Assembly: GCA_002269645.1 (NCBI GenBank)
Contig: NIVC01000671.1
Span: 1-64,000, forward strand
DNA length: 64,000 bases
Origin: Macrostomum lignano
Taxonomy: Eukaryota
Reading direction: 5' to 3'
Below, piece by piece: positions 1,510-46,692 of the stretch (positions within the stretch are counted from its first letter, which is position 1; every line of letters starts with the position of its first letter). Position numbers and translations under genes: made by a program. The notes beneath the pieces were generated by a model that had not been told where the DNA came from, made no database searches, and worked only from the letters and a program-made list of their open reading frames with translations.

Positions 1510-4500
1510 GTCATCAATGATCCGATCCATGGCACCATCGAGTTGCACAAGTTCGCCGAGCTCATAATGGGCGCGCCGGAGTTCCAGCGGCTGCGACACC
1601 TCAAGCAGCTGGGCGTCACCTACCTGGTGTACCCGTCTGGCACCCACACCCGATTTGAGCACTCTGTTGGTGAGCATAGTGACTGGCTGAGCTGGCTGAG
1701 TGACTGGCTGAGCTGGCTGAGTGACTGGCTGAGCTGACTGAGTGACTGGCTGAGCTGGCTGAGTGACTGGCTGAGCTGGCTGAGTGACTGGCTGAGCTGG
1801 CTGAGTGACTGGCTCAGCTGGCGAAGTGCCTGTAGCTGAGCAGTGAGTGACTGGCTGAGCTGACGGAGTGCCTGGAGCTGAGCAGCGAGTGACTGGCTCA
1901 GCTGGCGAAGTGCCTGGAGCTGAGCAGCGAGTGACTGGCTGATCCGGCGGAGTGCCTGGAGCTGAGCAATGAGTGACTGGGTGATCTGGCGGAGTGCCTG
2001 GAGCTGAGCAGCGAGTGACTGGCTGAGCCGCACCCCTCCGATCACTTCAGCACATACCACCTGGCCTGGCAGCTCGCCAAGACTCTGAAGAGCCGCGCCA
2101 CGACCCTGGAGACGGAGCTGACGGACGACGAAGTTCTGTGCGTGGCGCTGGCCGGCCTCTGCCACGACCTGGGCCACGGGCCCTTCTCTCACCTGTGGGA
2201 GGTGCTGGTGAAGACGGGAGACAGGTTCGCAGACTATCACCATGAGGGCATGAGTGTCCAGCTGGTTGACAGAATCATTGACCAAGTCATCGGCTCCGGT
2301 CTGTCGGGCGCCGCGAGTTCGCCGACTTCATGCGGAGGCGGCACGAAGCCTCGGGCGGCACCAACCGGGAGCTCATCAAGCAGCTGATTCTGGGCGGGCC
2401 CGAGGATCAGGAGATCCCACCGGGGCGGCAGTTTCTGTATGAGGTGAGGGGGGCCTAGGCGGCAGATTCTGTATGAGGTGAGGGGGGCCTGGGAGGCAGA
2501 TTCTGTATCAGGTGAGGGGGGCCTGGGAGGCAGTTTCTGTATGAGGTGAGGGGGACCCTAGGAGGCAGATTCTGTATGAGGTGAGGGGGGCCTGGGAGGC
2601 AGATTCTGTATCAGGTGAGGGGGGCCTGGGATGCAGATTCTGTATGAGGTGAGGGGGCCTGGGAGGCAGTTTCTGTATGAGGTGAGGGGGCCTGGGAGGC
2701 AGATTCTGTATGAGGTGAGGGGGGCCTGGGAGGCAGTTTCTGTATGAGGTGAGGGGGCCTGGGAGGCAGATTCTGTATGAGGTGAGGGGGCCTGGGAGGC
2801 AGATTCTGTATGAGGTGAGGGGGGCCTGGGAGGCAGTTTCTGTATGAGGTGAGGGGGCCTGGGAGGCAGATTCTGTATGAGGTGAGGGGGGCCTGGGAGG
2901 CAGTTTCTGTATGAGGTGAGGGGGGCCTGGGAGGCAGATTCTGTATCAGGTGAGGGGGGCCTGGGAGGCAGTTTCTGTATGAGGTGAGGGGGACCCTAGG
3001 AGGCAGATTCTGTATGAGGTGAGGGGGGCCTGGGAGACAGATTCTGTATCAGGTGAGGGGGGCCTGGATGCAGATTCTGTATGAGGTGAGGGGGGCCTGG
3101 GAGGCAGATTCTGTATGAGGTGAGGGGGGCCTGGGAGGCAGTTTCTGTATGAGCAGCCGCACTGCAATCGCTTCCCACAGATCATCAGCAACAAGAGGAC
3201 CGGGTTCGACGTGGACAAGTGGGACTACATCAACAGGGACTCCTACTTCCTGGGCCTCAACAACAAGCTGGACTGCCAGCGACAGCTCGCCATGCTGCGG
3301 GTGCTGCCGTGCGGGCAGGGCCGCAACCTGCTGGTGATTCGCGACAAGCAGGTGCTGGAGTACATCCAGCTGCTGGTGGCCCGCAGGGTCAACCACTATG
3401 TTGGCTACCAGCACATCAAAGTGATCGGCTTTGAGAAGCTGTGAGCTGCTTTCTAATGCCTTTGATCTGTGGCCAGCACCTGTGGTCTGGCCTCAACTGC
3501 CACCCCAACTGCCACCCCAACTGCCACCCCAACTGCCACCTCAACTGCCACCCCAACTGCCACCTCAACTGCCACTCAATGCCACCCCAACTGCCCCCCA
3601 ACTACCACTCAATGCCACCCCAACTGCCACCCCAACTGCCACTCAATGCCACTCCAACTGCCATCTCATCTGCCACCCCAACTGCCACCCCAACTGCCAC
3701 TCAATGCCACCCCAACTGCCACCCCAACTGCCACCCCAACTGCCACTCAATGCCACCCCAACTGCCACCTCAACTGCCACCCCAACTGCCACCTCAACTG
3801 CCACCCCAACTACCACCCCAACTGCCACTCAATGCCACCCCAACTGCCACCCCAACTGCCACCCCAACTGCCACCCAACTGCCACCTCAACTGCCACCCC
3901 AACTGCCACCCCAACTGCCACCCCAACTGCCACCCCAACTGCCACTCAATGCCACCCCAACTGCCACCCCAACTGCCACTCAATGCCACCCCAGCTGCCA
4001 CCCCAACTGCCACTCAATGCCACCCCAGCTGCCACCCCAACTGCCACCCCAACTGCCACCCCAACTGCCACCCTGAACGCCACCGCAGCCTGGGCGACGC
4101 GCTGCAGGCGGGCCGCAGCTTCCTGGAGTCGCAGCCCGTGGAGTCAGTGAACCCGGACGCCCGCCGCTACCTGCTGGAGGCTTCCGGCTCCGTGGAGACG
4201 CTATGCTGGCTGACGGACGCCCGCCTGGAGCTGCTGCTGACGGAGCACTGCGGCCCGACGGCCCGGCACCTGATGCAGCGTCTGGTCACCCGCAAGATGT
4301 ACAGCCTCGTGGCCACGGCGCGGTTGGCCTTGAAGGACCCCGAGGACAAGCGGAAGTACGAATCGGCCATAAAGAAGGCGCGGGCATTCTCGGAGGACTG
4401 GAACAGGCGGAACCCGCAGGCCTCGGACTACAGCACCATTGCGGAGTTCCGCAAGATCGACTACGGCAGCGGGCTGAACCACCCGCTTGACGAGGTGTTC

Positions 4501-10475: not shown

Positions 10476-13400
10476 TTACTCAGCAGTCGGCTTGAACCCA
10501 CAGGCGCTCATCTTCTCGCGGAAGTCAGCGACCTCCCGGCGCCGGAACTCCTTGACGGCCGCCGCATCGGCCGGAGGTTCCCCGGCCGTCCGCTCGTACA
10601 GCCGAACCACCGTGATGTGCAGCGCCGCCAGCTGCAGGTCCGCGAACTGAAAGGGACACGTCGGATCAAAGTTTATCACGACACCACTCTTCACTACTGT
10701 AAGTAGCAGTCAGTGCCTAGACTTGTCTCAACTGACACTGAAGCCTTGCCAATACTAGCTCAACTCCCAGCTCACCAACAAGCTCAACTCCCAGCTCACC
10801 AACAAGCTCAACTCCCAGCTCACCAACAAGCTCAACTCCCAGCTCACCAACAAGCTCAACTCCCAGCTCACCAACAAGCTCAACTCCCAGCTCACCAACA
10901 AGCTCAACTCCCAGCTCACCAACAAGCTCAACTCCCAGCTCACCAACAAGCTCAGCCCTCAGCTCACCAACAAGCTCAACTCCCAGCTCACCATCAAGCT
11001 CAACTCCCAGCTCACCAACAAGCTCAACTCCCAGCTCACCAACCAGCTCAACTCCCAGCTCACCAACAAGCTCTCCGAATCGCCGTCGCCGTTGCACTGC
11101 CTGACCTCGCCGTTCTTCGAGTAGCAGAAGACGCTGTCGAGCGGGTGCTGCGGCCCGCAGCCGTAGTCGAACTTGCGCAGCTCGGCGATGCTGCGGCTCC
11201 GCGAGGCGTTCCAGTGGGTCACCGCAATCTTGACAGCCTCCAGCTGGTTCTTGTAGACAGCCGTGGCCTCGTCATCGGCCGTGGAGTGCAGCGCCACCCT
11301 CACGCTGGCCAGGTGGCGGTACTTCCGGCGCTCCTCCAGCTGCTTCATCAAGCGCGCAGCCTCCGGACCGCAGCTCTGCTTGAGCAGCTCGACGAGGCGG
11401 TCGTCGGTGAGCCACAGCAGCGACTCCAGCGACTCCGGCTCGTCCAGTAGGTAGCGGATGGCCAAGCGGTTGACATCCGGGTCGTCACGGTGCGCCTGCA
11501 GGTGGCGTCGGGCGGCTGACAGTGCGTCCTGCAGGCTGCAAGGTGGTGAGGTGACCTGAGTCAATTGTCCTGTATTTCTGCTGTACTCAATAAAAGCTTA
11601 TCGTTAGCGATTTTTATACATGCGAATTTCTAATATTGCTACTGCTAGTAGAGCAGACTGAAAATTGGCGATCACAGGGAAATCCCTGTGACAGGGGACG
11701 GCATAATTCTTACACTTTCTCAAAGGCTACCGACTTCACGTGCTGGTAGGCCAGGTAGTGCTGCATCCTCCGCGAGATCAACAGGTTGATGTAGTCCAGC
11801 ACCTGTTTGTCCCTCAGGACCAGCAGCTTGCGGTTGCCGGGGCAGGGCAGCACCCGCAACAGCGACAGCTGCCGAGTCGCATCGAAGCGGTTGGGCAGCC
11901 CCAGGCTGAGCGCGTCCCGGTTCATGTAGTCCAGCTTGTCCACGTCGTAGCCCGTGCGCTTGTTGTTAACGACCTGCGGTTTCAGAAATGCCAGTTGGTG
12001 TCTGACCGAGACAGAGCTGATCTCCTGAGCTGATCACCTGAGCTGATCACCTGAGCTGACCACCTGAGCTGATCACCCAAGCTGACCACCTGAGCTGACC
12101 ACCTGAGCTGATCACCTGAGCTGATCACCTGAGCTGATCACCTGAGCTGACCACCTGAGCTGACCACCTGAGCTGATCACCTGAGCTGACCACCTGAGCT
12201 GATTTAGTGCTAACAAACTGAAAACTCCTATCTAGCTAATGCATTTTGCTGCGATTAACCGGCCGTCAAAGTTCGTCTACTGATAAGTAGAAAGTTTAGA
12301 GTGTGACGCAAAAAGCTCGCATGGCGGGCAAAGAAATGCCGCCATGCGAAAGCACAGGAGTGGAAGTTCTGTTCAGCCTGGCTAATGGGTGGAGTCCAGC
12401 CCGGGTTCGATTCCACTTTCAGCTCGCTGACAGCGAGTGTGGGGTCCTTCTACTTTTAGTCGTCCATGGATCGGCCATCATGGGTCACCAACCTCGAACA
12501 GGAATTGCTTCTCGGGTGGGATTCGCTCGGAGTCGCCACCCGGTCCGCCCCGGATGAGGTCGCAGACCAGCTGCTTGTGGGTCCAGTTGGGCCTCCAGCA
12601 GCGGTCCATGAACGCAGAGAATTCCATGGACTCCTGGTCCTGCCTGCTGGCGATGTCGGTCACAATGGACTGGAACACCTGCACGCTCATCGCCTCATGG
12701 TGATAGTCGATGCCGCAGGACTTCAGCAGCGACTCCCACAGGTGGGAGAACGGGCCGTGGCCGAGGTCGTGGCAGAGTCCCGCGATGGCCGCGCACAGCG
12801 CCTCGCTGTCCGAGAACTCCGACTCGGACAGGCAGCTGCGCAGCTTCTTGCCCAGCTCCCAGGCCAGGTGGTAGGTGCTGCGGGCAGCGGCAGGTGGCAG
12901 AACTAAACTGCTCAGCGCTTGGAGTCAGCAGAGCAGCGACTTCGATTCACGCAACATGCATTCACACAACATGCATTCACACAACTGGCAATCATAACCT
13001 GGACTCACACATTCACACTTAAAAATATACTCAGCCTGCATTCCCTTAGCCCGTATTCACACAGCCTCAAATTTACACAACATGCATTCACACAACATGC
13101 ATTCGTACAACATGCATTCACACAACATGCATTCACACAACATGCATACACACAACATGCATTCACACAACATGCATTCACACAACATGCATTCACACAA
13201 CATACAGTAGTACAATCGTACAACCTTGCATTCACACAACATGCGTTCACACAACATGCATTCACACAACATGCATTCACACAACATGCATTCACACAAC
13301 ATGCATTCACACAACATGCATTCACACAACATGCATTTGCACAAACAATATTCACGCAGCATAATTTCACACAAACCGCATTAATATTACAAGTATTCAC

Positions 13401-19490: not shown

Positions 19491-22400
19491 TCAAAGGGGG
19501 TCACGGGCCCTCCTCGCGGCCCTCCTCAATGTAGGGCATGGCCAGGACGGACGCCCGCTTGTTGCTGATGTTGCTGGGCCTCGGAGGCTGATGGCCTTGA
19601 GCTCCTTGACCAGCGACTCCAGCTGCTTGACCGTCTCTTCAATGCGGTCGAATCTCTCCATCCGCTCGTTGAGGGCGTTCACCTGCTGGAAGATGATCTT
19701 GTTGCCTTCGTCCAGGTCCTCCTCGTCCAGCACCACGCCGTTGAGGGACGAGCGGCGGTTGCGGAAGGCCAGCGCCTGCGGGGCCGATCGAGTGGGTAAA
19801 CAGGTGGGCATCCTTGCAGGTATCCTAGGTATCCTTTACAGGCATAGAATGTGCACCTGTTCTGACTGTACAGGCACAGAATGTGCACCTGTTCTGTCTG
19901 TACAGGCACAGAATGTGCACCTGTTCTGGCTGTACAGGCACAGAATGTGCACCTGTTCTGGCTGTGCAGGCACAGAATGTGCACCTGTTCTGGCTGTGCA
20001 GGCACAGAATGTGCACCTGTTCTGGCTGTGCAGGCACAGAATGTGCACCTGTTCTGGCTGTGCAGGCACAGAATGTGCATCTGTTCTGTCTGTACAGGCA
20101 CAGAATGTGCACCTGTTCTGGCTGTACAGGCACAGAATGTGCACCTGTTCTGGCTGTGCAGGCACAGAATGTGCACCTGTTCTGGCTGTGCAGGCACAGA
20201 ATGTGCACCTGTTCTGGCTGTGCAGGCACAGAATGTGCACCTGTTCTGGCTGTGCAGGCACAGAATGTGCACCTGTTCTGGCTGTGCAGGCACAGAATGT
20301 GCATCTGTTCTGACTGTACAGGCACAGAATGTGCACCTGCTCTGATCGCGGACTTTGGGAATCACAGCCCAGCCCGGCTCACTTGGTAGTACAGGCTGAG
20401 CAGGTACACCTTGCAGTCGTGCGGGGTGTCCCCAGCTGACGCGGGGGCTGCGGAATTCACCGCGGCCTCGGCGGCAACAACGGCAGCGGCGGGCTGCCCG
20501 CGCTGCTCCTCACCGGCGCCGGAGCGGCGGCACAGTCGGCGCCAGACGAAGGACGCCAGGTTGCGCAGCTCCGACAGGATGTTGAAGGGCGGCGGCAGCG
20601 CCGACCTGGTGTTGAACTCCTCGATAAGGTCGAACTTCTCAAACTGCCACATGGCCTTGGACTCGCTGTCGATGGCGTCGATGGTCTTGCTGAACATGGC
20701 GACGATGACGTTGAGCAGCAGGATCTGCATCACCACGATGTACAGCACCATGTACACCGTGGGCACCAGCACCGCGCCAATGGGGTGCACGCAGTCGGGC
20801 TCATCACCATCGTTTATGTTCGGCCCGGTGATGTCGCTGATGTTGCAGGGCACGAAGTTGTCGAGCCCGTACTCGCCCACGATGGCGTAGAAGGTGTTGC
20901 GGAACATGCCGAGGATGATCTCGCTGGCGCTCTCGCGACCTTCGGTGCCGGTGCTCTGGATGGACTTGCCCTCGGGGTATTGCAGCGCCTGCGCCGTGGC
21001 GGTGGGGCGGTGGGCTGGTGGCGGCTCTGAACTGGACTGCGGCTCATGGAGCAACAGCGGGTCTCCGGGCAACAAATAGAGATTCACGCACTCCACACCC
21101 ATTAGCACCCATTAGCACCCATCAGAACCCATTAGCACCCATTAGAGTCCATTAGCACCCATTAGCACCCATTAGAACCCATTGGAACCCATTAGAACCC
21201 ATTAGAACCCATTAGAACCCATTAGCACCCATTAGCACCCATTAGAACCCATTGGAACCCATTAGAATCCATTAGAACCCATCAGAACCCATTACCACCC
21301 ATTAGCACCCATTAGCACCCATTAGCACCCATTAGAACCCATTGGAACCCATTAGAACCCATTAGAACCCATTAGAACCCATTAGAACCCATTAGAACCC
21401 ATTAGAACCCATTAGCACCCATTAGCACCCATTAGAACCCATTAGAACCCATTAGCACCCATTAGCACCCATTAGAACCCATTAGAACACATTCTGCACC
21501 CATTAGCACCCATTAGAACCTATTAGCACTCATTAGAACCCATTAGAACCCATTAGAACACATTCTGCACCCATTAGCACCCATTAGAACCCATTCTGCA
21601 CCCGTTAGCACCCAATAAAATATTTGTTGTAATAAGTTGTAAAATATAAATGTAAAATTAGTTCTAAAATATTGCTCGTAATAGTTGATATTCTCCTTTG
21701 CTATTTTCTCGACAAGCACGGCAACGAAGGGATTCCCCAAGGCACGCAGCTGGTCCCCAATGCCCAGTGCAGCACAGCTGGTCCCCAATGCCCGGTGCAG
21801 CACAGCTGGTCCCCAATGCCCAGTGCAGCACAGCTGGTCCCCAATGCCCAGTGCAGCACAGCTGGTCCCCAATGCCCGGTGCAGCACAGCTGGTCCCCAA
21901 TGCCCAGTGCAGCACAGCTGGTCCCCAATGCCCAGTGCAGCACAGCTGGTCCCCAATGCCCGGTGCAGCACAGCTGGTCCCCAATGCCCAGTGCAGCGCA
22001 GCTGGTCCCCAATGCCCGGTGCAGCACAGCTGGTCCCCAATGCCCAGTGCAGCACAGCTGGTCCCCAATGCCCAGTGCAGCACAGCTGGTCCCCAATGCC
22101 CGGTGCAGCACAGCTGGTCCCCAATGCCCAGTGCAGCACAGCTGGTCCCCAATGCCCAGTGCAGCACAGCTGGTCCCCAATGCCCGGTGCAGCACAGCTG
22201 GTCCCCAATGCCCGGTGCAGCACAGCTGGTCCCCAATGCCCGGTGCAGCACAGCTGGTCCCCAATGCCCAGTGCAGCACAGCTGGTCCCCAATGCCCGGT
22301 GCAGCACAGCTGGTCCCCAATGCCCGGTGCAGCACAGCTGGTCCCCAATGCCCGGTGCAGCACAGCTGGTCCCCAATGCCCAGTGCAGCACAGCTGGTCC

Positions 22401-25400
22401 CCAGCACAGCCTCTCACATGGAAGGTGACGCCGAAGCCGAACATGAGCACGAACAGAATGAACAGGAAGGGCAGGAAGTCCTTCTTCACCATGAGCGACA
22501 TCATCTTGAGCTTCGGGCCGAGGCTCTCCAGCACCACCGATATGTAGAGCAGGCGCACCCAGTACACCAGGCAGGTGGTGGTGAGCAGCACCAGCGACCA
22601 GTAGCGCTGGAACGGGTTGTGCACTGTGCTGTTGTGGATCCGCAGGGCGAAGGCGGTGAAGCCGCAGGTGATGGCGGTGATGTCGATGACGTTCCAGCCG
22701 TCCAAGAAGTAGTTCTTGATGGTCTCCTCCCTGGCGCTGGTGATCATCTCGTTGATCTCCTCGACCAGGAAGCCCAGCAGGGTCAGGTAGCAGATGATTT
22801 CCCCGACGGAGAAGGCGCGGCCCATCTGGAACATGACCACGAAGGACAGCAGCAGCACGAAGCTGATGTGCGCCGTCACGTGCATGCGGAACTTCACGCA
22901 GGGGATCTGGTAGAAACGCAGCAGCTCCGCCAGCGGGCTCAGCCGCGGCCTCGGCTGCTGCTCCTCCTCCGGCTGCTTTTGCTGCTTCCGGCCGCCCTGC
23001 AGCAGCGCCACGTCCTGCTCGCTGGAGCCTCCGGTGCGCTTCTCATGCGCCCGGCAGCGGCCGTCGGCGTTCCCGGATGACTCGCTGATGCTGCTGGGCC
23101 GCAGGCGCACGTAGTCGGGCTCGTGAGCGCGGAAGCGGGGCATCAGGAACAGCAACAGCGGGTACAGCAGCGGCACGAAGCCGCAGGCGATGGCCAGCTC
23201 GATCAGCGCTCCTTGGTGAGCATCCTTGCGGGCAAAGAAGAAGTCCGTGTACCACATCCGGTTCAGCGCCTCCTGCGGAAGGCGGGTTGGGGTGTCAAAT
23301 AGATGGGCTGAGTCTGCAGTCTGCACCCAGCTGAATCTGCAGGCTGCACCCAGCTGAATCTGCAGACTGCATCCAGCTGAATCTGCAGGCTGCACCCAGC
23401 TGAATCTGCAGGCTGCACCCAGCTGAATCTGCAGGCTGCACCCAGCTGAATCTGCAGACTGCATCCAGCTGAATCTGCAATCTACGAGTACAGTCTTCAT
23501 CCAGCTGGACTCCCAGCCTCCTCACCTGCACGATGTCGATGATGACGAAGCTGCTGGACTCGCCCTTGGCCGCCAGCTCCAAGATGCTGTAGCCGCCGAA
23601 GGTGTCGAGCGGCAGCATGACCAGCTCCATGGTCAGGCAGTTGTTCGGTGTCACGTCGACATCCTTGATGCTGCGGAGGGCCTGCATGGCGATGCCCTCG
23701 CAGGTGATGGCCATCTTGGTAGCCTTGTTGGCATAGACGTCCTCGATGTCGCGCCGGCGGCCGAGGCTGCGCAGGATTTTGGCCAGCAGCAGCGCCTGCG
23801 GAATGGTGTCGAAGTCCTCCTGGCGCAGGAAGTAGGGCGCCAGGCGCAGACGGCCGGTCAGCACGCACCAGACCGCCAGGGATTCCACCGGATCGCGCAT
23901 GGCCTTCAGGTGCGGCGGCTCCTGTCGGCCAGGCGTGGTGGCCGGGGTCTCCTCCGCCTCCGAGTCGTCCGCGCCGACCCACTGCAGCTGCCAGAACTGC
24001 GTGAGCTGCGCTACCAGGCGGTGCAGCTTCAGGCTGCTGACCCGGCCTTCATCATTAAGGCAGTTGCGGCACACCAGGCCCTTGATGCCGTCCTTGCGGC
24101 GCTCGCCCAGGCTTTGGTTGTACACCTGGTGGGAGCGGATGAGCAGTAGATTCAGAACTGCTCTTTCATGAAACACTCGTATCGCTCTTCATCTTGCTCT
24201 GATGCTTTGCATTTACAGACCCTGCCAGTGTCTGTGTGTCAGTGCTGTGTCAGTGTCTGCCAGTGTCTGCCGCCAGTGTCTGTCTGCCAGTGCTGTGTCA
24301 GTGTCTGCCAGTGTCTGTGCCAGTGTCTGCCAGTGTCTGCCAGTGTCTGTGTGTCAGTGCTGTGTTAGTGTCTGCCAGTGTCTGCCAGTGTCTGTGTCAG
24401 TGCTGTGTCAGTGTCTGCCAGTGTCTGCCAGTGTCTGTGTGTCAGTGCTGTGTCAGTGTCTGCCAGTGTCTGCCAGTGTCTGTGTGTCAGTGCTGTGTCA
24501 GTGTCTGCCAGTGTCTTCCAGTGTCTGCCAGTTTCTGCGCCAGTGTCTGCCAGTGTCTGCCAGTGTCTGCGCCAGTGTCTGCCAGTGTCTGCCAGTGTCT
24601 TGCCAGTGTCTGCCAGTGTCTGTCAGTGTCTGCCAGTTTCTGTTCCAGTGTCTGTGTGCCAGTGTCTGCCAGTGTCTGTGTGTTAGTGTCTGCCAGTGTC
24701 TGCCAGTGTCTTCCAGTGTCTGCCAGTTTCTGTTCCAGTGTCTGTGTGCCAGTGTCTGCCAGTGTCTGTGTGTTAGTGTCTGCCAGTGTCTGCCAGTGTC
24801 TTCCAGTGTCTGCCAGTTTCTGTTCCAGTGTCTGTGTGTCAGTGTCTGTGTGTCAGTGTCTGTGTGTCAGTGTCTGTGTGTCAGTGTCTGCCAGTGTCTG
24901 CCAGTGTCTTCCAGTGTCTGCCAGTTTCTGTTCCAGTGTCTGTGTGTCAGTGTCTGTGTGTCAGTGTCTGTGTGTCAGTGTCTGCCAGTGTCTGCCAGTG
25001 TCTTCCAGTGTCTGCCAGTTTCTGTTCCAGTGTCTTTGCCAGTGTCTGTGCCAGTGTCTGTGCCAGTGTCTGTGCCAGTGTCTGCCAGTGTCTTCCAGTG
25101 TCTGCCAGTTTCTGTTCCAGTGTCTGTGTGTCAGTGTCTGTGTGTCAGTGTCTGTGTGTCAGTGTCTGTGTGTCAGTGTCTGCCAGTGTCTGCCAGTGTC
25201 TTCCAGTGTCTGCCAGTTTCTGTGCCAGTGTCTGTGCTCATTCTCCCAGCACCTCAGCACTCACGTGAACAATCCTGTTCTCAAGGTGCACCACAACAGC
25301 GGACCACAGCATCCCGAGCTTCATCACCTCCTGCAGCAGCGCCTCATTCTGGGGCACGAAGATGTGCTTGAGAAAGTTGTCGGCGATCTTCCCGACCATG

Positions 25401-28400
25401 CCGCCGCTGATGATCTCGTCCGCCAGGCCGGTCATGCAGGCCTTCAGCACGATCTCAACGAACTCGTTGATGTCGAACTTCTCGCTGAAGCGGATGTGCG
25501 TGAGCAGCGTGTTGTTGGTGTTGTTGTCCAGCAGGTTCGTCTCCTCGTTGCACTCGTTGTGGCCGAAGTTGTGCTGGAACTCGTTGTCCACCGTGCGCAG
25601 CAGCCGGAGGAATTGCTGGCCCTGCCGCATCGCCAGCAGCTCCTTGATGCAGCTGCCACCGCTGCTGAGCACGGGGCTCACCATCCACTGGCCCATACCC
25701 TCCAGGATCGCCGTGTCCTGTGGGATGGCCCAGTTTTAATGCAAAACCTGCAATTCCCCACCTGCAGTTCCCCTCCTGCAGTTCCCCTCCTGCAGTTCTC
25801 CACCTGCAGTTCCCCACCTGCAGTTCCCCACCTGCAGCTCCCCACCTGCAGTTCCCCACCTGCAGTTCCCCTGCAGTTTTTCTCCTGCAGTTCCCCTCCT
25901 GCAGTTCCCCTCCTGCAGTTCCCCACCTGCAGTTTTTCTCCTGCAGTTTTTCTCCTGCAGTTCCCCTCCTGCAGTTCCCCTCCTGCAGTTCCCCTCCTGC
26001 AGTTCCCCTCCTGCAGTTCCCCACCTGCAGTTCCCCTCCTGCAGTTTTTCTCCTGCAGTTCCCCTCCTGCAGTTCCCCTCCTGCAGTTCCCCACCTGCAG
26101 TTCCCCTCCTGCAGTTTTTCTCCTGCAGTTCCCCTCCTGCAGTTCCCCTCCTGCAGTTCCCCACCTGCAGTTTTTCTCCTGCAGTTCCCCTCCTGCAGTT
26201 CCCCTCCTGCAGTTTTTCTCCTGCAGTTCCCCTCCTGCAGTTCCCCTCCTGCAGTTCCCCACCTGCAGTTCCCCTCCTGCAGTTTTTCTCCTGCAGTTCC
26301 CCTCCTGCAGTTCCCCTCCTGCAGTTCCCCACCTGCAGTTCCCCTCCTGCAGTTTTTCTCCTGCAGTTCCCCTCCTGCAGTTCCCCACCTGCAGTTCCCC
26401 TCCTGCAGTTCCCCTCCTGCAGTTTTTCTCCTGCAGTTCCCCACCTGCAGTTCCCCTCCTGCAGTTCCCCACCTGCAGTTCCCATCCTGCAGTTCCCCTC
26501 CTGCAGTTCCCCACCTGCAGTTCCCCTCCTGCAGTTCCCCTCCTGCAGTTCCCCACCTGCAGTTCCCCTCCTGCAGTTTTTCTCCTGCAGTTCCCCTCCT
26601 GCAGTTCCCCACCTGCAGTTCCCCTCCTGCAGTTTTTCTCCTGCAGTTCCCCTCCTGCAGTTCCCCTCCTGCAGTTTTTCTCCTGCAGTTCCCCACCTGC
26701 AGTTCCCCTCCTGCAGTTTTTCTCCTGCAGTTCCCCACCTGCAGTTCCCCTCCTGCAGTTTTTCTCCTGCAGTTCCCCTCCTGCAGTTCCCCTCCTGCAG
26801 TTTTTCTCCTGCAGTTCCCCACCTGCAGTTCCCCTCCTGCAGTTCCCCTCCTGCAGTTCCCCACCTGCAGTTCCCCTCCTGCAGTTCCCCTCCTGCAGTT
26901 CCCCTCCTGCAGTTCCCCACCTGCAGTTCCCCTCCTGCAGTTTTTCTCCTGCAGTTCCCCTCCTGCAGTTCCCCTCCTGCAGTTTTTCTCCTGCAGTTCC
27001 CCACCTGCAGTTCCCCTCCTGCAGTTCCCCACCTGCAGTTCCCCTCCTGCAGTTCCCCTCCTGCAGTTCCCCACCTGCAGTTCCCCTCCTGCAGTTCCCC
27101 TCCTGCAGTTTTTCTCCTGCAGTTCCCCTCCTGCAGTTCCCCTCCTGCAGTTTTTCTCCTGCAGTTCCCCACCTGCAGTTCCCCTCCTGCAGTTTTTCTC
27201 CTGCAGTTCCCCTCCTGCAGTTCCCCTCCTGCAGTTTTTCTCCTGCAGTTCCCCACCTGCAGTTCCCCTCCTGCAGTTCCCCTCCTGCAGTTCCCCACCT
27301 GCAGTTCCCCTCCTGCAGTTCCCCTCCTGCAGTTCCCCTCCTGCAGTTCTCCTGCAGTTCCCCACCTGCAGTTCCCCTCCTGCAGTTTTTCTCCTGCAGT
27401 TCCCCTCCTGCAGTTCCCCTCCTGCAGTTTTTCTCCTGCAGTTCCCCACCTGCAGTTCCCCTCCTGCAGTTCCCCACCTGCAGTTCCCCTCCTGCAGTTC
27501 CCCTCCTGCAGTTCCCCACCTGCAGTTCCCCACCTGCAGTTCCCCTCCTGCAGTTTTTCTCCTGCAGTTCCCCTCCTGCAGTTCCCCTCCTGCAGTTTTT
27601 CTCCTGCAGTTCCCCTCCTGCAGTTCCCCACCTGCAGTTCCCCACCTGCAGTTCCCCTCCTGCAGTTCCCCACCTGCAGTTCCCCACCTGCAGTTCCCCT
27701 CCTGCAGTTTTTCTCCTGCAGTTCCCCTCCTGCAGTTCCCCACCTGCAGTTCCCCACCTGCAGTTCCCCACCTGCAGTTCCCCAAGCAGGCCCAGCCCAG
27801 TGCGGCCCCACCTGCTTCGCCAGCACGATGTCAATGGGTGTTCGCTCCTGAATGTCGTAGAGGTCCAGCCGGGGGCCGGAGCGCAGCACGGTCAGGAACA
27901 GCTTGGAGTTGCCCAGGTTGGCGGCAATGTGCAGCGGCGTGAAGCCCCTGGCGCCGTGCCGATTGCACAGGTGCGGGTTGTGCGACAGCAGCAGCTGGGC
28001 GGCGCGCACGTTCTCCTCCAGGCAGGCCCGATGGATGGGCAGGTCGCCGTGCTGGTCGAAGGTGCCGCAGCTGGCGCCGTGGTCCAGCAGCAGGTGCAGG
28101 AACCGGTCATCTTTGCGGATCCTCACGGCTGCGTGCACGGTGGACTCGACCTTGTTGGCGCCGCCGTTGGCATTGGCGCCCTCCTCCAGCAGCAGCTGCA
28201 GCGCTTCCAGCGATTTTCGCGCCAACGCCAGGTCCAGTGCTGTCTCGCCATTCTTCGTCTGCGCTTCCAGCTCAGCCTGAAGGGTTCCAGGCGGAGACGG
28301 GAGTTCCAACTTTAACATCTGCTCAGTCACTAAGATGGCAGCAGCAGCACCTGACAAATCAGTCACTGGTCTATCACTGGTCAGTCACTGGTCAATCACT

Positions 28401-29728
28401 GCTCAGTCACTGCTCAGTCACTGGTCAATCACTGGTCAGTCACTGCTCAGTCACTGGTCAATCATTGCTCAGTCACTGGTCAATCACTGCTCAGTCACTG
28501 CTCAGTCACTGGTCAATCACTGGTCAGTCACTGCTCAGTCACTGGTCAATCACTGCTCAGTCACTGCTCAGTCACTGGTCAATCACTGGTCAATCACTAC
28601 TCAGTCACTGGTCAATCACTGCTCAGTCACTGGTCAATCACTGCTCAGTCACTGGTCAATCACTGCTCAGTCACTGGTCAATCACTGCTCAGTCACTGGT
28701 CAATCACTGCTCAGTCACTGGTCAATCACTGCTCAGTCACTGGTCAATCACTGGTCAGTCACTGCTCAGTCACTGGTCAATCACTGCTCAGTCACTGGTC
28801 AATCACTGCTCAGTCACTGGTCAGTCACTGCTCAGTCACTGGTCAATCACTGGTCAGTCACTGCTCAGTCACTGGTCAATCACTGCTCAGTCACTGGTCA
28901 ATCACTGCTCAGTCACTGGTCAATCACTGGTCAGTCACTGCTCAGTCACTGGTCAATCACTGCTCAGTCACTGGTCAATCACTGCTCAGTCACTGGTCAG
29001 TCACTGCTCAGTCACTGCTCAGTCACTGGTCAGTCACTGCTCAGTCACTGGTCAATCACTGCTCAGTCACTGGTCAATCACTGCTCAGTCACTGGTCAAT
29101 CACTGCTCAGTCACTGGTCAGTCACTGCTCAGTCACTGGTCAATCACTGCTCAGTCACTGGTCAATCACTGCTCAGTCACTGGTCAATCACTGGTCAATC
29201 ACTGCTCAGTCACTGGTCAATCACTGGTCAATCACTGCTCAGTCACTGGTCAATCACTGGTCAGTCACTGGTCAGTCACTGGTCAATCACTGCTCAGTCA
29301 CTGGTCAGTCACTGCTCAGTCACTGGTCAATCACTGCTCAGTCACTGGTCAATCACTGCTCAGTCACTGGTCAATCACTGCTCAGTCACTGGTCAATCAC
29401 TGGTCAGTCACTGCTCAGTCATTGCTCAGTCACTGGTCAGTCACTGCTCAGTCACTGGTCAGTCATTGCTCAGTCACTGCTCAGTCACTGCTCAGTCACT
29501 GCTCAGTCACTGCTCAGTCACTGGTCAATCACTAGACACAAGAACTGAGGGTCTCACGTGGCTGCTGATGAGGACGCTCAGCACATCGCAGCGGTTGTCG
29601 GCTGCCGCCTTGTGCAGGAGTCGCCAGCCCAGGCTGCTGTCCAGCTCCGAGTTCGGCGACACGCTGCCCGCTGCCAGCAGCTCGCGCAGCAGGGACGGAG
29701 ATTCGTAGGCGCGGGACAGGCTGCCCAT
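19491..29728 (-). CDS. TRP cation channel, TRPM-like core with N-terminal ankyrin repeats, ~1144 aa. Exons 29728-29558 (start tentative), 28276-27812, 25717-25265, 24125-23526, 23272-22418, 20988-20383, 19775-19491.
   Basis: Seven exons join in frame via GT-AG introns, all phase 0 (3435 nt). Ankyrin motifs: GWRLLHKAA, GETALDLA, VESTVHAA, GDLPIHRA, GFTPLHIA. MHR4-like linker: LAVWCVLTGRLRLAPYF...ALLLAKIL. S1-S6 region: GWNVID, LGPKLKM, FH|ALQYP, pore IVGEY, LLLNVIVAMFS. TRP box WQFEKF...LPPPFNIL, then a C-terminal coiled coil. Confidence 0.9.
19838..20340. repeat. 32-bp intronic minisatellite CAGGCACAGAATGTGCACCTGTTCTGGCTGTG
   Basis: ~15 tandem copies in the last TRP intron. Confidence 0.95.
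21098..21612. repeat. 10-bp intronic repeat CCCATTAG(A/C)A
   Basis: Tandem copies. Confidence 0.95.
21745..22403. repeat. 28-bp intronic minisatellite GCAGCACAGCTGGTCCCCAATGCCC(A/G)GT
   Basis: ~23 tandem copies, in the same intron as the 10-bp array. Confidence 0.96.
23290..23480. repeat. 23-bp intronic repeat GCACCCAGCTGAATCTGCAGGCT
   Basis: ~8 tandem copies. Confidence 0.92.
24222..25236. repeat. 10-bp intronic repeat CCAGTGTCTG with variants
   Basis: Tandem copies. Confidence 0.95.
25747..27783. repeat. 14-bp intronic satellite, three interspersed variants (minus strand CTGCAGGAGGGGAA / CTGCAGGTGGGGAA / CTGCAGGAGAAAAA), ~145 copies
   Basis: Fills the 2-kb TRP intron; source of the 700-1359 aa spurious ORFs. 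Confidence 0.97.
28358..29532. repeat. 11-bp intronic satellite CA(G/A)TCACTG(C/G)T
   Basis: ~105 tandem variant copies in the first TRP intron. Confidence 0.97.
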
Positions 29729-32534: not shown

Positions 32535-34980
32535 TCAGACGAGCAGCGGCTGCTCACTGGCGGGCACGGAGGTCCGCATCGCCTGCTCATAGTTGGGCGG
32601 CGGAGGGCGCCTGCGCCGCATCTCGGCAGCCACCAGCCTGGCGAGCGGCGACTCGTGCCCGGAGCAGAGAAGCCGCTGGGCGGCGGCCAGACGGGCGGCC
32701 CGCAGCTGGCGCAGTCGGCAGGCGTAGGTGGCGGCGAGCAACAGCAGGAGGCAGCCGGCGGTGGCGGCCAACACGGCGGCCAGGGCGACGCTCGGCCGCG
32801 GCCAGCGCTCGCAGGCGGCCTCGTCCTCGCCGCCCTGGCAGTCGACGACGCTGTCGCATCGGTAGGCGGCGGGCAGGCAGCGGCCGGAGTCGCAGAGGAA
32901 GCTGCCGTTGGCCGGGCCGCACCGGCTGGCCGCGCAGTCCAGCTCGTCCGTGGCGTCCCGGCAGTCCGGCCGGCCGTCGCAGCGCTCGGCGGACGTGTAG
33001 CAATGGTTGCCATAGCGACAGGCGTAGGAGCCGGCGCAGCCGCGGCAGTTGAGCTCGTCGGCGCCGCTTTGCTTGCAGCGCCAGAGGCCGTCGCAGCGCA
33101 GCGCCGGCGAGAAGCAGACGCTGGCGTCCTCCGGGCAGGCCTGCTGGAAGCCTGCGGGACAGCGGCGGCGGGCGGGGCAGGCGTGAACTCTCTCTAGCTT
33201 ATGCTCTACTCTGCACTTGCGGCAGCACAGCAACCCCGCACGGATAAGCACGGATTAAATCCGAATTGCTAATCGCATGGGCCGTACTATAAACCACACC
33301 GCGACTCCTCAAGGAGCTGGGAGTCTGGGAATCCTTGAAGGCGCAGCTATTCTTAGGTCTCTTAAACAGCAGCTCAGCATCAATAGCCACTCGCGCTACC
33401 TGGAATGCAGGCTCCCGCCAGCTGGTACGACAGGTTGAAGCTGCCGCCGGCCGGCCCCATCACGGCCTCCACGGTCAGGGGGCCCGGCTGGGGGCCCAGC
33501 GCCCACAAGCCGCGGTCGCTGTCGCCACCATTCAAGGAAAGCAGGCGGGAGTCACTGCCGCGGGAGGAGTCACCGGCGTAGATCTTCAGGGAGCCGGAGT
33601 CCTCCGGCAGACTGAGCGCCACCGGCTCCAGCACCAGGCGGTTCAGGGCGCCCTGCCGCACCGCCCAGCGGCACACGCGGACCGCGTCGCCGGGGCCCCA
33701 GGCGGTGCCCAGGAAGCCGTAGGTGGCGGTCAGCTCGCGAATGCAGTTGGCAGCGGCACCTGGCGGGTAGTCAGTGAACGTTTGAAGGGCGTTAGACAAT
33801 ACGAGGGGTGTTAGACAATGAAGGGATGTTAGACAGAGAGGGGATGTTAGACAGTGAGGGGATGGTAGACAGAGAGGGGATGTTAGACAGTGAGGGGATG
33901 TCATTTAGTAAGGGGTTGTTATTCAGTAAGGGATGTTAGACAGAGAGGGGATGTTAGACAGTGAGGGGATGTTAGACAGAGAGGGGACGTTAGACAGTGA
34001 GGGGATGTTATTCAGTAAGGGGATGTTATTTAGTAAGGGATGTTAGGCAGTGAGGGATGTTAGACAATGAAGGGATGTTAGACAGAGAGGAGATGTTAGG
34101 CAGTGAGGGATGTTAGACAATGAAGGTATGTTAGACAGAGAGGAGATGTTAGACAGAGAGGGATGTTAGACAGTGAGGGGATGTTAGACAGAGAGGGATG
34201 TTAGACAGTAAGGGGATGTTAGATAGTGAGGGATGTTAGACAATGAGGGGATGTTAGACAGTGTGAGGGGATGTTAGACAATGAGGGATGTTAGACAGTG
34301 AGGGGATGTTAGCCAGAGAGGGGATGTTAGACAGTGAGGGGATGTTAGACAGAGAGGGGATGTTAGGCAGTGAGGGGATGATAGACAGAGAGGGATGTTA
34401 TATATTAAGGGGATGTTAGACAGTGAGGGATGTTAGACAGTGAGGGGATGTTAGTGAGGGGATGTTATTCAGTAAGGGGATTTTAGGCAGTGAGGGGATG
34501 TTAGACAGAGAGGGGATGTTAGACAGAGAGGGATGTTAGGCAGTGAGGGGATGTTAGACAGTGAGGGGATGTTAGACAGAGAGGGGATGTTAGGCAGTGA
34601 GGGAAGATAGACAGAGAGGGATGTTAGACATTAAGGGGGATGTTAGACAGTGAGGGGATGTTAGTGAGGGGATGTTATTAAGTAAGGGGATGTTAGGCAG
34701 TGGGGGGATGTTAGACAGAGAGGGGATGTTAGACAGAGAGGGGATGTTAGACAGAGAGGGGATGTTAGGCAGTGAGGGGATGTTAGACAGTGTGAGTGGA
34801 TGTTAGGCAGTGAGGGGATGTTAGACAGAGGGGATGTTAGACAGTGCAAGAGGTGTTATACAATGAGAGGAGTGTTAGTGTGAAGGCTGATATCTAAGAG
34901 CCATATGAAATAAAAAACTCACCTCCATTTTCAAGCACCAGCCAGCTTGCAGAAATAAAGAAGAAAAGGGCTGCTTGCAT
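32535..34980 (-). CDS. LRP3/LRP10/LRP12-family receptor: signal peptide, one CUB, three LDLa repeats, TM helix, PPxY tail; ~344 aa. Exons 34980-34923, 33759-33400, 33151-32535.
   Basis: Exon 1 MQAALFFFISASWLVLENG is signal-peptide-like and has a phase-1 GTGAGT donor matching the phase-1 acceptor at 33759. A CUB-like exon follows, then three C-x-CDG..C..G.DE..C LDLa repeats and a hydrophobic TM segment. The tail ESPLARLVAAEMRRRRPPPPNYEQAM resembles the LRP12-type ETQLSRVEAELLRREAPPSY. Confidence 0.85.
33800..34860. repeat. Degenerate ~18-bp intronic repeat GAGGGGATGTTAGACAGT
   Basis: Fills LRP-like intron 1. Confidence 0.93.
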
Positions 34981-43542: not shown

Positions 43543-46500
43543 GAGGACCCGGGACTGCGGGTTTCCACTTGCGGACTCGGCGGTGGACTCGTCGGGCATT
43601 GGCCAGGTGTGGCACAGCAGGGCGCACAGGAAGCTGGCGTAGGGCTGGCAGACGGGCTGGCGCAGCTGCAGCCGGACGGCCTTGTTGCCGGGCTCGGCCA
43701 GCGGCGAGTCGGCCAGGTGCTTAGGCAGGTAGCCGGACGAGCCTAAGCGCAGGCGGTACCAGCGGCCGGGCCGCAGCAGGACGGGCTTGGGCAGGTTGAT
43801 GGTGTAGTAGGGCACCAGCTGCTCGGGCTTGTAGGAGGCTTCGGTGCAGACGAACTTGGGCAGCGGGATGTCCTCCACATCGTCGCAGGCGGTCACAGAG
43901 ATGGAGACGAACGGCGGCTGGGCGGGCGGGCAGAGCGGCCGGAAAATCTCGCAGCCGCAGAGGACCAGGCGGCGGAGGGAGCGGAACTCGATGCAGCCCG
44001 ACAGGGGCACCGCGTGCGGCACCGGCTGCTCCGGCCGCCACAGGCTTGTGGAGTCGTATATGGTGACGGGCTCCACCTTCTGCGGGATGGGCGGCAGATG
44101 GCGGGCTGTGGCGAGACTGCGTGGCTGGCTGGGGGACCTCAGCGCCTCTCTCCTAGGCCCCTCTTTAGACCCCAGTCTCCCCCAGACCGGTCTCCTAGGG
44201 CTCCCAACAGACCACAGTCTCTTCTAGACCCTGTGCCTCCCGGACCCCACTTTCTCCCCAGTCTATCCAGAAACAAGTTCCAGACCCCAGTTTACCCATA
44301 CCGCAGTCTACCTAGACCCCAGTCTCCCCAAACCCAGTCTACCCATACCGCAGTCTACCCATACTGCAGTCTACCCATACCGCAGTCTACCCATACCGCA
44401 GTCTACCTAGACCCCAGTTCCAGACCCCAGTCTCTCCCAGAAGTGACAGCAGCAGGGGCAGCACTAACCAGCGAGTCGGGATTGATGCGGCGAGGCCACT
44501 CGCGACAGCTGTCATCTCTCTGCGCGCGGCGGGTGAAGGCTTCCAGAAGCTGCTGATCGTTGAGCAGCCCGCTGGGCGCGGCCAGGTCGGTCAGCTGCCG
44601 CCGGGTCATGTAGGAGAACCGGACGCAGGCCAGGAGCTCGGCGCGGATGTCGGAAGCCTGCGGCAGAAAATGAATTCAGTCACAGTTTTGCTGTTTACAG
44701 ACAAGTCCAGGATATTCACTGAGTCCCGCCCCGCTCACCTCCAGCGCCTGAAGCCGCGCCGCCGGCTGCTTTGACTGGAGTCCCTGGCGCAAGCACTCGG
44801 CGTCCACCCAGTCGATGAGGCAGTTGAGAACCTCCGCCTCCGTGCAGGGCAGATAGTCCTGCAATGGGATTTGCTTGGATTAGGAATCGAGATGGGGATT
44901 TATCTCTCATTTGCAGGAAAGCAATAACCAAGACATGTGGACCTCGGTGACAGACACAGGCGCTAAACATTGTGGCACCTGTGCAATAATAAGCCTGAGT
45001 GCGGTCTACAGGCTGTCATGTACATTTAGGAGTTACAGGAGCGGACAAGCGAAATTCAATGGAAATCAGCGATTTCAACCTCTGGTGCGGGCTCAGCGGT
45101 TAACGAACAGCGATCCTGAGCTAATTAGAGATCCAAGCGGCTCACAGATTACAGCAGTGAGACCTCAGGTGAATGCTAATTTAGAACTCAGCTAATTAGA
45201 GATCCAAGCGGCTCACAGATTACAGCAGTGAGACCTCAGGTGAATGCTAATTTAGAACTCAGCTAATTAGAGATGCAAGCGGCTCACAGAGGACAGCAGT
45301 GAGACCTCAGGTGAATGCTAATTTAGAACTCAGCTAATTAGAGATGCAAGCGGCTCACAGAGGACAGCAGTGAGACCTCAGGTGAATGCTAATTTAGAAC
45401 TCAGCTAATTAGAGATGCAAGCGGCTCACAGAGGACAGCAGTGAGACCTCAGGTGAATGCTAATTTAGAACTCAGCTAATTAGAGATGCAAGCGGCTCAC
45501 AGAGGACAGCAGTGAGACCTCAGGTGAATGCTAATTTAGAATTCATCTAATTAGAGATGCAAGCGGCTCACAGAGGACAGCAGTGAGACCTCAGGTGAAT
45601 GCTAATTAAGAATTCATCTAATTAGAGATGCAAGCGGCTCACAGAGGACAGCAGTGAGACCTCAGGTGAATGCTAATTTAGAACTCAGCTAATTAGAGAT
45701 GCAAGCGGCTCACAGAGGACAGCAGTGAGACCTCAGGTGAATGCTAATTTAGAACTCAGCTAATTAGAGATGCAAGCGGCTCACAGAGGACAGCAGTGAG
45801 ACCTCAGGTGAATGCTAATTTAGAACTCAGCTAATTAGAGATGCAAGCGGCTCACAGAGGACAGCAGTGAGACCTCAGGTGAATGCTAATTTAGAACTCA
45901 GCTAATTAGAGATGCAAGCGGCTCACAGAGGACAGCAGTGAGACCTCAGGTGAATGCTAATTTAGAACTCAGCTAATTAGAGATGCAAGCGGCTCACAGA
46001 GGACAGCAGTGAGACCTCAGGTGAATGCTAATTTAGAATTCATCTAATTAGAGATGCAAGCGGCTCACAGAGGACAGCAGTGAGACCTCAGGTGAATGCT
46101 AATTTAGAATTCAGCTAATTAGAGATGCAAGCGGCTCACAGAGGACAGCAGTGCCACCACAGCCTCGGCGGAGCACTGTGGCAGACGGGGCGCCAGGAGG
46201 TCCCAGCACCTGCTGGCCCTGTCAAGGCACTCGCGCACAACATCCTGCGTCAAGGTACAGGCAGTTCTGCAGGATGTCCGGCAGGTTGTCAGACGAGATG
46301 GAGCCGACAAGGAAGCGGGAGCAGGCCTCGACCAGGCCCTGCAGCAGGTACTTCTTGGCCGCGTACAGCGTTTCAAACACACAGCTCTCGTTGATGCCGG
46401 ACACCGAGTCGGAGTAGGCATAGTCCAGCAGGTTCTGGAAGGCCTCGGTGTCGATGTCCTTCAGCTCGAAGCTGTCCTGGTTGGCTGACAGGTCGCTGCG

Positions 46501-46692
46501 GAACATGGCGGCAAACACGGGGCTGGCGGCGGCCAGGATCACCCGGTGGGCGGCGAACTCCTGCCGCTTGTCCGACACCAGGAAGCGGACGTCCGCGAAG
46601 TCCTGCTGGCGCAGCGAGACCAGCAGGCGCTGGTTCAGCGGCGAGTTGGGCATGACGGCTGCCAGCCACCTGGCGTGCTTGCTGACAAGCAT
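43540..46692 (-). CDS. BTB/POZ-BACK-PHR-like protein (BTBD1/2/3/6-like), ~466 aa. Exons 46692(or 46749)-46140, 44858-44739, 44657-44469, 44079-43540. One apparent frameshift at ~46248.
   Basis: BTB domain: ADVRFLV...FAAHRVILAAASPVFAAMF...AAKKYLLQGLVEAC. BACK domain: EAEVLNCLIDW...VRFSYMT. C-terminal IEFRS...INLPKPVLLRPGRWYRL is PHR-like. Phase-0 GT-AG introns. The frame switches between LYLD and QDVVREC. Confidence 0.85.
44150..44436. repeat. Degenerate CCCAGTCT / CGCAGTCTACCCATAC intronic repeat
   Basis: Short degenerate copies in BTB intron 3. Confidence 0.7.
45097..46152. repeat. 71-bp intronic tandem repeat, ~15 copies, each with 13 nt of exon end plus the GTGAGC donor (minus strand)
   Basis: Period 71 measured (45241, 45312, 45383). 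The terminal unit overlaps exon end 46140. Confidence 0.96.

Follow-up and report, generated by a model that had tools for sequence, protein, structure and literature searches.

A Macrostomum lignano gene predicted to encode a TRPM-type channel with ankyrin repeats in place of the SLOG region, a probable free-living relative of the parasite channel TRPM_MCLZ

The meclonazepam target of schistosomes, Sm.TRPM_MCLZ (Smp_333650), was earlier labelled 'TRPM7-like'; it mediates Ca2+ entry with a linear current-voltage relationship that reverses near 0 mV, and it is activated via a cavity that S1-S4 and the TRP helix form together (PMC10788528). This channel is devoid of the NH2-terminal MHR1/2 or SLOG region and carries ankyrin-repeat modules instead (PMC11731825), and N-terminal ankyrin repeats are likewise described for it in PMC12861061, whereas TRPM_PZQ has the SLOG-bearing TRPM architecture (PMC11731825). 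Rohr et al. (2026), who catalogued 63 orthologs across trematodes, monogeneans, and cestodes, suggested the group name 'TRPM-like' (PMC12861061). In the TRP phylogeny of Himmel et al., ankyrins are absent from TRPM and TRPS, and an ankyrin-free ancestor is inferred (PMC7306681); flatworms and a gain of ankyrins both go unmentioned in a 2026 paper on the domains that TRPMs have gained and lost (PMC13143021). Here we describe a gene of the flatworm Macrostomum lignano located on a 64,000-nucleotide stretch of DNA (contig NIVC01000671.1, positions 1 to 64,000; hereafter, the window), at 19491 to 29728 of the minus strand. The evidence supports that its product is a TRPM-type channel with canonical ankyrin repeats in place of SLOG/MHR1-2, and we place it, from sequence comparison, as a free-living-flatworm member (part of an in-paralog set) of the TRPM_MCLZ clade.

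The exons were rebuilt from the sequence, using six-frame open reading frames (ORFs) and splice-site context, with two boundaries set against the database proteins P0001 and P0005. The resulting gene contains seven exons and six introns, all of them in phase 0 and flanked by GT-AG, and encodes 1144 amino acids. Residues 1-1117 of its product are identical to those of P0001, a M. lignano protein named 'ANK_REP_REGION domain-containing protein' in UniRef, and all six splice junctions yield gap-free collinearity with the intronless paralog P0005. The seven exons, the 1144-residue length, and the 27812/25717 junction proposed in a first-pass annotation, made from the DNA letters alone, were thus reproduced.

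Pfam detected Ank_2 at the N terminus (E 3e-18, residues ~66-208 in the final numbering), followed by PF25508 (TRPM2-like, 436-571) and Ion_trans (730-972), the latter two ranges being in the numbering of a preliminary exon model. The PF25508 match reached 32.6 bits, against a cut-off of 27 bits, and covered positions 126-255 of the 257 in the profile, i.e., the C-terminal half only. When the PDB was searched by sequence, TRPM3 came first (E 1e-41 over residues 447-1017), ahead of TRPM1, Nematostella TRPM2, TRPM2, TRPM7, and TRPM4, while NOMPC and ankyrins aligned to the N-terminal repeats only. An AlphaFold2 model built from a 14-sequence family alignment (pLDDT 72, pTM 0.67) showed an N-terminal helical cap (residues 2-20), five canonical ankyrin pairs (37-55, 70-88, 103-122, 137-156, and 171-189), a degenerate sixth pair (204-229), and an all-helical continuation up to residue 405, after which a disordered acidic and proline-rich segment was found. 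Then came the MHR3/4-like helices (446-612), a disordered loop (613-675), pre-S1 and S1-S6, the TRP helix (952-975), the rib helix (1036-1053), and a long C-terminal helix (1073-1103). Foldseek with the whole model returned TRPM3, the TRPM2 chanzyme, TRPM5, nvTRPM2, and TRPM4 at E values of ~1e-14 to 1e-15, and hhalign between the family and canonical TRPMs gave a probability of 100% over residues 200-1141.

No match to SLOG/LSDAT_euk was obtained with Pfam, either at E<=0.1 for the whole protein or at E<=10 for the linker that follows the ankyrins. Similarly, the AlphaFold2 model contained no alpha/beta fold N-terminal of MHR3/4, only helices being present before residue 446. Given that the model shows no beta-sheet domain ahead of the membrane, the Rossmann-like fold of SLOG (MHR1/2) is absent. 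No NUDT9-H, Nudix, or kinase domain was detected, the ORF ending at 19491, and Pfam found neither TRP_2 nor any other TRPC-specific domain in the protein. The first-pass annotation had described about five complete ankyrin repeats, and these were recovered both as Ank_2 and as the five canonical helix pairs, to which the degenerate sixth is now added. Its MHR3/4-like region is in agreement with PF25508 and with the alignment to TRPM3 from residue 447; its six transmembrane segments, TRP box, and coiled coil agree with Ion_trans, with the transmembrane and TRP helices of the model, and with helix 1073-1103; and the absence of a NUDT9-H or kinase tail held. It had also proposed a domain-swapped TRPM-like channel in which ankyrins replace MHR1/2, a proposal in concordance with the lack of SLOG by Pfam and AlphaFold2 and with the hhalign probability for TRPMs.

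Between the ankyrins and the recognizable MHR3/4 lies a linker (residues 213-445) that is conserved in all family members. By itself, it gave no Pfam match and no match in the PDB sequence search, and no fold in the PDB matched a separate AlphaFold2 model of residues 200-445 with an E value below 2. In full-length hhalign and HMMER alignments, the linker was collinear with canonical TRPM residues ~350-640 (the end of MHR2 plus MHR3), although this does not constitute independent evidence; linker-only hhalign against TRPM N termini yielded E values of 0.1-0.6, which are not significant. Likewise, residues 364-445 were collinear with TRPM residues ~475-640 in hhalign but not significant alone (E 0.1-0.2). 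Lacking any significant match of its own, whether in sequence or in fold, the stretch was treated as a family-specific helical linker, and it may be a much-diverged N-terminal part of MHR3. A candidate SLOG remnant within residues 213-445, ISGGMVGKIADNF, which resembled the TRPM motif GSGRAAD, was rejected, its glycines not being conserved in P0005.

With the non-ankyrin part as the query, HMMER was run exhaustively against 1.84 billion representative proteins and gave 1878 hits. Word-indexed searches with the same part or with a 13-sequence family profile found only M. lignano proteins and one TRPC, and a word-indexed search with the full protein was dominated by ankyrin-3, so that other flatworms were reached only by exhaustive HMMER. 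All hits above ~200 bits were flatworm proteins or assemblies clustering with them, and the ordinary SLOG-bearing TRPMs of many phyla appeared below the family in the hit list. The family members comprised at least 10 M. lignano clusters together with proteins of Opisthorchis viverrini, O. felineus, Dicrocoelium dendriticum, Fasciolopsis buski, and Schistocephalus solidus, those of Schistocephalus and Fasciolopsis carrying the database name 'TRPM7-like'. The full-length members share Ank, TRPM2-like, and Ion_trans, an architecture observed in at least eight of the M. lignano clusters as well as in Opisthorchis, Dicrocoelium, Fasciolopsis, and Schistocephalus. Further members were P0130, P0131, and P0282, from contigs of public sequencing runs, and P0136 and P0152, from MetaClust; these five may come from other flatworm orders. 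P0130 and P0131 have Y-Y instead of the H-H pair of S1 and an AAEY filter.

When 133 sequences were compared over 281 columns of the S1-TRP region, neighbor joining with a TRPC outgroup recovered the ankyrin-bearing family, including the window gene and the trematode and cestode sequences, as monophyletic in 51 of 60 bootstraps, and the M. lignano paralogs among themselves in 54 of 60. The sister of the family was the group of flatworm SLOG-TRPMs, with weak support (21/60). When TRPMs were scored with the 13-sequence family profile, they reached 167-436 bits, with a median of 247 for outsiders; the flatworm SLOG-TRPMs were the best-scoring outsiders (330-378 bits), and the TRPC P0305 scored 95 bits. 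The view of the first-pass annotation that the pore is of the TRPM type is borne out by these scores and by the E value of 1e-41 against TRPM3.

The published pocket positions of TRPM_MCLZ could be read off the family alignment. Trematode and cestode members showed H-H-Y-E-R-x-Y-R/K-T/S, and the published lineage variants were found as well (F946/K1120/S1121 in cestodes and Y946 in Plagiorchiida). As the window gene falls into one group with trematode and cestode sequences bearing this published signature, we assign it to the TRPM_MCLZ clade. The likeness extends to the N-terminal ankyrins replacing MHR1/2-SLOG, the TRPM-type S1-S6, the TRP helix, the C-terminal helices, and the lack of NUDT9-H, and H827, H831, E868, R943, and R1120 all have conserved equivalents, with identical spacing in S1-S2. 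The novelty that the first-pass annotation had implied for this design did not survive, because the architecture has already been catalogued as TRPM_MCLZ or 'TRPM-like' (PMC11731825, PMC10788528, PMC12861061). Apparently new are the presence and the expansion of the family in a free-living basal flatworm. The host of the window gene is a free-living macrostomorphan, whereas PMC10788528, PMC11731825, and PMC12861061 do not mention free-living species; the gene is 1 of at least 10 paralog clusters in M. lignano, while those papers describe one gene per parasite genome; it has seven exons, compared to three in schistosomes; and its product keeps a G-E filter (VGE), in contrast to the FEVS, FDIG, or AAEY of neodermatan members.

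The pocket of the window protein consists of H694, H698, F731, E735, R803, Y806, F973, R976, and S977. It keeps five of the nine TRPM_MCLZ positions, and its S1-S2 spacing (4, 33, 4) coincides with that of the schistosome numbering. Among the ligand residues H827, H831, Y864, E868, R943, and Y1117, four of the six are retained (H694, H698, E735, and R803). The differences are Y864 to F731, Y1117 to F973, the sensitivity-determining H946 to Y806, and T1121 to S977.

Regarding the pore, the VGE of the window protein (V885-G886-E887, 20872-20880 of the minus strand) aligned with the YGE of TRPM3. All M. lignano paralogs retain a [V/F]G[E/D] filter (VGE, VGD, or FGE), and [Y/F]GE was the motif seen in TRPM3 and in most invertebrate TRPMs. 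FGE and YGE filters are typical of the divalent-permeable TRPM3/6/7, a type that the VGE filter would resemble. The filter IVGEY had been noted earlier as noncanonical, which stands as far as V replaces Y/F, but it departs only mildly from the [Y/F]GE motif of TRPM3/7. In the column corresponding to residues 884-888, trematode and cestode orthologs were without the near-universal filter glycine of TRPMs (FEVS, FDIG, or AAEY), and this loss hints that the parasite channels may have different pore properties.

E735, E738, N757, D760, and E972 presumably match, in the alignment with TRPM3, the Ca2+-site pattern of TRPM2/4/8. With such a putative TRPM2/4/8-like site, Ca2+ modulation would be plausible.

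Taken together, the locus very probably encodes a subunit of a tetrameric, nonselective, Ca2+-permeable cation channel of the flatworm 'TRPM-like' clade, whose founder is TRPM_MCLZ. Gating would proceed via the conserved cavity of S1-S4 and the TRP helix, which is the meclonazepam site of the schistosome ortholog and in which H694, H698, E735, R803, and R976 are retained, and cytosolic Ca2+ may modulate the channel via the apparently intact TRPM2/4/8-type site. Gating of the ADP-ribose type is not expected, as neither SLOG nor NUDT9-H is present. The ankyrin array would probably serve as a protein-protein or cytoskeletal docking surface, which is a guess. As to its origin, the replacement of SLOG by ankyrins most likely took place once, in a flatworm TRPM, before the split between Macrostomorpha and Neodermata, after which M. 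lignano would have expanded the family to at least 10 paralog clusters, the window gene among them. The presence of the architecture in M. lignano would date the replacement before the rise of parasitism.

Several points weigh against this interpretation. The exon joins of this exact locus were predicted from DNA and not from transcripts, the C-terminal tail of the window copy is frameshifted, and the role given to the ankyrin array is pure conjecture. Assignment to the TRPM_MCLZ clade was made via trematode and cestode proxies, Smp_333650 not being in the data set, and the tree is a neighbor-joining one on 281 columns, without TRPS or vertebrate references and with a sister relation of 21/60. 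In addition, sensitivity to meclonazepam is not expected, because both pocket tyrosines are Phe and H946 is Tyr.

The dependence on predicted joins raises the question of whether an ankyrin gene (exons 1-2) might have been wrongly joined to an adjoining, N-terminally truncated TRPM gene (exons 3-7). Exons 2 and 3 are indeed separated by a 2.1-kb gap filled with repeats, and the genome annotation of Schistocephalus splits the ortholog into two ankyrin models plus one Ion_trans model. However, the paralog P0005 (BOX15_Mlig022043g1), 46-49% identical over its full length, has the entire architecture in a single uninterrupted ORF of 3363 nt on a 240-kb M. lignano contig, and the paralogs P0264 and P0124 have one small intron each, located elsewhere. 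The cestode ortholog P0134 (Schistocephalus solidus cluster, 1413 amino acids, ankyrins plus channel) is likewise encoded by an uninterrupted ORF on an intron-free contig of 4579 nt, assembled from sequencing run SRR19629954; the 212/213 junction between exons 2 and 3 keeps the frame and aligns without gaps to every family member; and expression of the published Sm.TRPM_MCLZ cDNA yielded a single functional protein (PMC10788528). An erroneous join is thus very unlikely. In view of the single-ORF paralog and the intron-free cestode contig, ankyrins and channel would be part of one mRNA, and the fusion appears not to be an artefact of the gene model, the decisive evidence being independent of splicing. 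A different doubt arises from the frameshift, which removes a tail resembling those of other members and could mark the window copy as a decaying duplicate (a pseudogene) in a recently duplicated genome. The introns bloated with minisatellites and the several near-identical but error-laden M. lignano models (P0002-P0004) would fit such a decay. Relative to the source of P0001, a C-run at 19575-19578 (minus strand) is one base shorter, which shifts the last 27 codons and makes the last 27 residues differ from those of P0001. Nevertheless, the other frame downstream of the run still reads the exact P0001 tail, ending in SNISNKRASVLAMPYIEEGREEGP and a stop, which suggests either an indel in the assembly or a mutation of very recent date. 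The shift lies in a homopolymer run past the coiled coil, all 1117 upstream residues are identical to those of P0001 with no stop codon, and the splice sites are canonical; we regard decay of this copy as improbable.

Turning from the gene to its ancestry, a TRPC/TRPN/TRPA-type ankyrin channel with a superficial likeness to TRPM could be suspected from the canonical N-terminal ankyrin repeats, and NOMPC did appear at rank 15 of the fold matches, although in the sequence matches it entered via the ankyrin region only. Against this, PF25508 passed the Pfam cut-off, no TRP_2 domain was present, TRPM entries filled both the sequence and the fold match lists from the PDB, and the TRPC reached 95 bits with the family profile, compared to a TRPM median of 247, leaving virtually no room for such an origin. 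Another proposal takes the ankyrins of the protein as ancestral, the family being a relic of a pre-SLOG, ankyrin-bearing TRPM/TRPS ancestor in which MHR3/4 would be degenerate ankyrins continuous with the array. It draws on the ankyrins carried by all other group 1 TRP families, on divergent ankyrin repeats reported for MHR3/4 (Burroughs 2015, as cited in PMC13143021), on a linker without a detectable SLOG remnant, and on the weak placement of the family beside flatworm TRPMs in the tree (21/60). On the other hand, among the 150 best of the 1878 hits, the ankyrin-bearing members were flatworms or assemblies clustering with them, the highest-scoring outsiders were flatworm SLOG-TRPMs, and the family shares TRPM-specific features of MHR4, the TRP helix, and the rib/coiled-coil region. 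Retention would moreover need many independent losses of the lineage, and the TRPM-TRPS ancestor inferred by Himmel et al. is without ankyrins (PMC7306681). We consider retention unlikely and favor a single replacement of SLOG by ankyrins in a flatworm TRPM. Only slightly better are the chances of a bolder proposal, namely, that the ankyrin-for-SLOG design predates the parasites and that the 10 or more M. lignano channels, with their G-E pore and putative Ca2+ site, show the original condition of the drug target clade, in which gating is physiological, which we hold to be a doubtful reading. Its most extreme form would be that the family is the surviving lineage of pre-SLOG, ankyrin-bearing TRPMs, with no secondary swap.

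The canonical alpha-type TRPMs (TRPM3, TRPM1, and TRPM7), which were the best solved-structure matches, share with the window protein MHR3/4, the transmembrane domain, the G-E filter, the LLN of S6, the W-x-F of the TRP box, and LPPP; the window protein differs in having ankyrins and a novel linker instead of SLOG/MHR1-2, and no kinase. In S2, its E735 is like the Ca2+-site glutamate of TRPM2/4/8, whereas TRPM3 has Lys. The nearest outsiders, the flatworm SLOG-TRPMs (Schistosoma 'TRPM2' and the M. lignano LSDAT_euk proteins P0140-P0144, P0151, and P0190), have FGE or FGD filters and, unlike the window protein, keep SLOG/MHR1-2 and, some of them, NUDT9-H. An N-terminal ankyrin array before a six-transmembrane TRP channel is shared with TRPN/NOMPC, TRPC, TRPA, and TRPV, but in contrast to TRPN and TRPC, the transmembrane domain, linker, TRP region, and C terminus are of the TRPM type, and NOMPC has 29 repeats, compared to 5 or 6 here. 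TRPS (ced-11 type), the sister family of TRPM, is also without a kinase; it has SLOG and Nudix, a divergent TRP box 2, and no ankyrins (PMC7306681), whereas Pfam found ankyrins but neither SLOG nor Nudix in the window protein.

These results bear on both drug targets and TRP evolution. TRPM_MCLZ is a validated anthelmintic target for which the published work covers parasites only (PMC10788528, PMC11731825, PMC12861061), and the general statement on TRP evolution that TRPM-clade channels lack canonical ankyrins (PMC7306681) is corrected by the family. The M. lignano paralogs provide many natural variants of pocket and pore for structure-function comparison. Transgenesis and RNA interference are usable in M. 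lignano, a tractable, nonpathogenic model for what TRPM_MCLZ-type channels normally sense. For annotators, Schistocephalus serves as a warning that the ankyrin and channel exons of this family can fall into separate gene models. The S. solidus genome models P0283-P0285 consist of two ankyrin pieces of 179 and 475 amino acids and an Ion_trans piece of 790 amino acids, where contig L002:150-4391 and a UniRef entry give one protein of 1413 amino acids instead of three models.

The whole coding region (19491-29728, minus strand) rests on the exon model, the P0001 identity over residues 1-1117, and the collinearity with P0005, and its exons, all on the minus strand, are distributed as follows. Exon 1 (29558-29728, residues 1-57) contains the start codon (ATG at 29728), the N-terminal capping helices, and ankyrin repeat 1 (AlphaFold2 helices 2-20 and 37-55) and ends with the donor CAC|GTGAGA; conservation of this N terminus extends to the paralogs and to the orthologs of trematodes and cestodes. 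Exon 2 (27812-28276, residues 58-212), whose acceptor TTCAG|GCT was picked by identity to P0001, encodes ankyrin repeats 2-5 and the first helix of the degenerate sixth, as indicated by Ank_2 (E 3e-18), Ank_4, Ank_5, and the helix pairs 70-88, 103-122, 137-156, and 171-189. The first part of the all-helical linker, for which AlphaFold2 predicted only helices (pLDDT 70-89), is encoded by exon 3 (25265-25717, residues 213-363). Exon 4 comprises the end of the linker with the disordered acidic and proline-rich stretch (23880-24125, residues 364-445; AlphaFold2 and hhalign) and then the TRPM MHR3/4-like helical domain, containing LAVWCVLTGRLRLAPYF (23526-23879, residues 446-563; PF25508, and phmmer to TRPM3 from residue 447).

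Exon 5 (22418-23272, residues 564-848) runs from the end of MHR4 through the disordered loop 613-675, pre-S1, the voltage-sensor-like S1-S4 domain, and the S4-S5 linker to S5, matched by Ion_trans and by AlphaFold2 helices within 687-851, and includes the pocket residues H694, H698, F731, E735, R803, and Y806. The pore loop and helix, S6, the TRP helix with its LPPPFN motif, and most of the rib helix are found in exon 6 (20383-20988, residues 849-1050; TRPM3 alignment), the donor of which, CAA|GTGAGC, was picked by P0001 identity and by the LYYQ motif conserved in P0005. Its TRP box, WQFEKF (20632-20649, residues 962-967), aligned with the WKFQRY of TRPM3, and W962 is invariant across the family. 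Finally, exon 7 (19491-19775, residues 1051-1144; acceptor CCGCAG|GCG) encodes the end of the rib helix, the coiled-coil helix predicted by AlphaFold2 (residues 1073-1103, 19709-19617), the tail, and the stop codon.

The gene sits in GC-rich DNA, and nearly all of its noncoding parts are minisatellite. Each intron (window 19776-29557) is almost wholly one or two minisatellite arrays, with 10-70 unique bases beside the splice sites; the units are 22 bp repeated 53 times, 14 bp 146 times, 10 bp 95 times, 23 bp 7.5 times, 28 bp 23.5 times plus 10 bp 51 times, and 32 bp 16 times. No introner-like signature (shared termini or target-site duplications) was seen among the six introns. None of their positions is common to the paralogs (P0005 at L001:8001-11363; L003:1001-4580; L004:1001-4484): P0005 is intronless, P0264 is interrupted once, by a 241-nt intron in the pore filter after IVGE, and P0124 also once, by a 106-nt intron in the pre-S1 loop. 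These differences suggest either that the window gene gained its introns recently or that the paralogs underwent retroposition and lost introns.

Other coding-looking features were observed in the window. Upstream of the channel gene and on the same strand, a Cys-rich ORF with repeats like those of LDL receptor class A (32538-33254, minus strand) adjoins another coding-looking ORF (33383-33904, minus strand), and an ORF with a BTB/POZ-like sequence, DVRFLVSDKRQEFAAHRVILAAASPVFAAMF, lies at 46225-46755 of the minus strand. At the other end, 2019-2384 (plus strand), 10962-11597 (minus strand), and 12481-12924 (minus strand) contain two copies of an HD-domain motif in opposite orientations, with a SAMHD1-like look, and an exon-like ORF.

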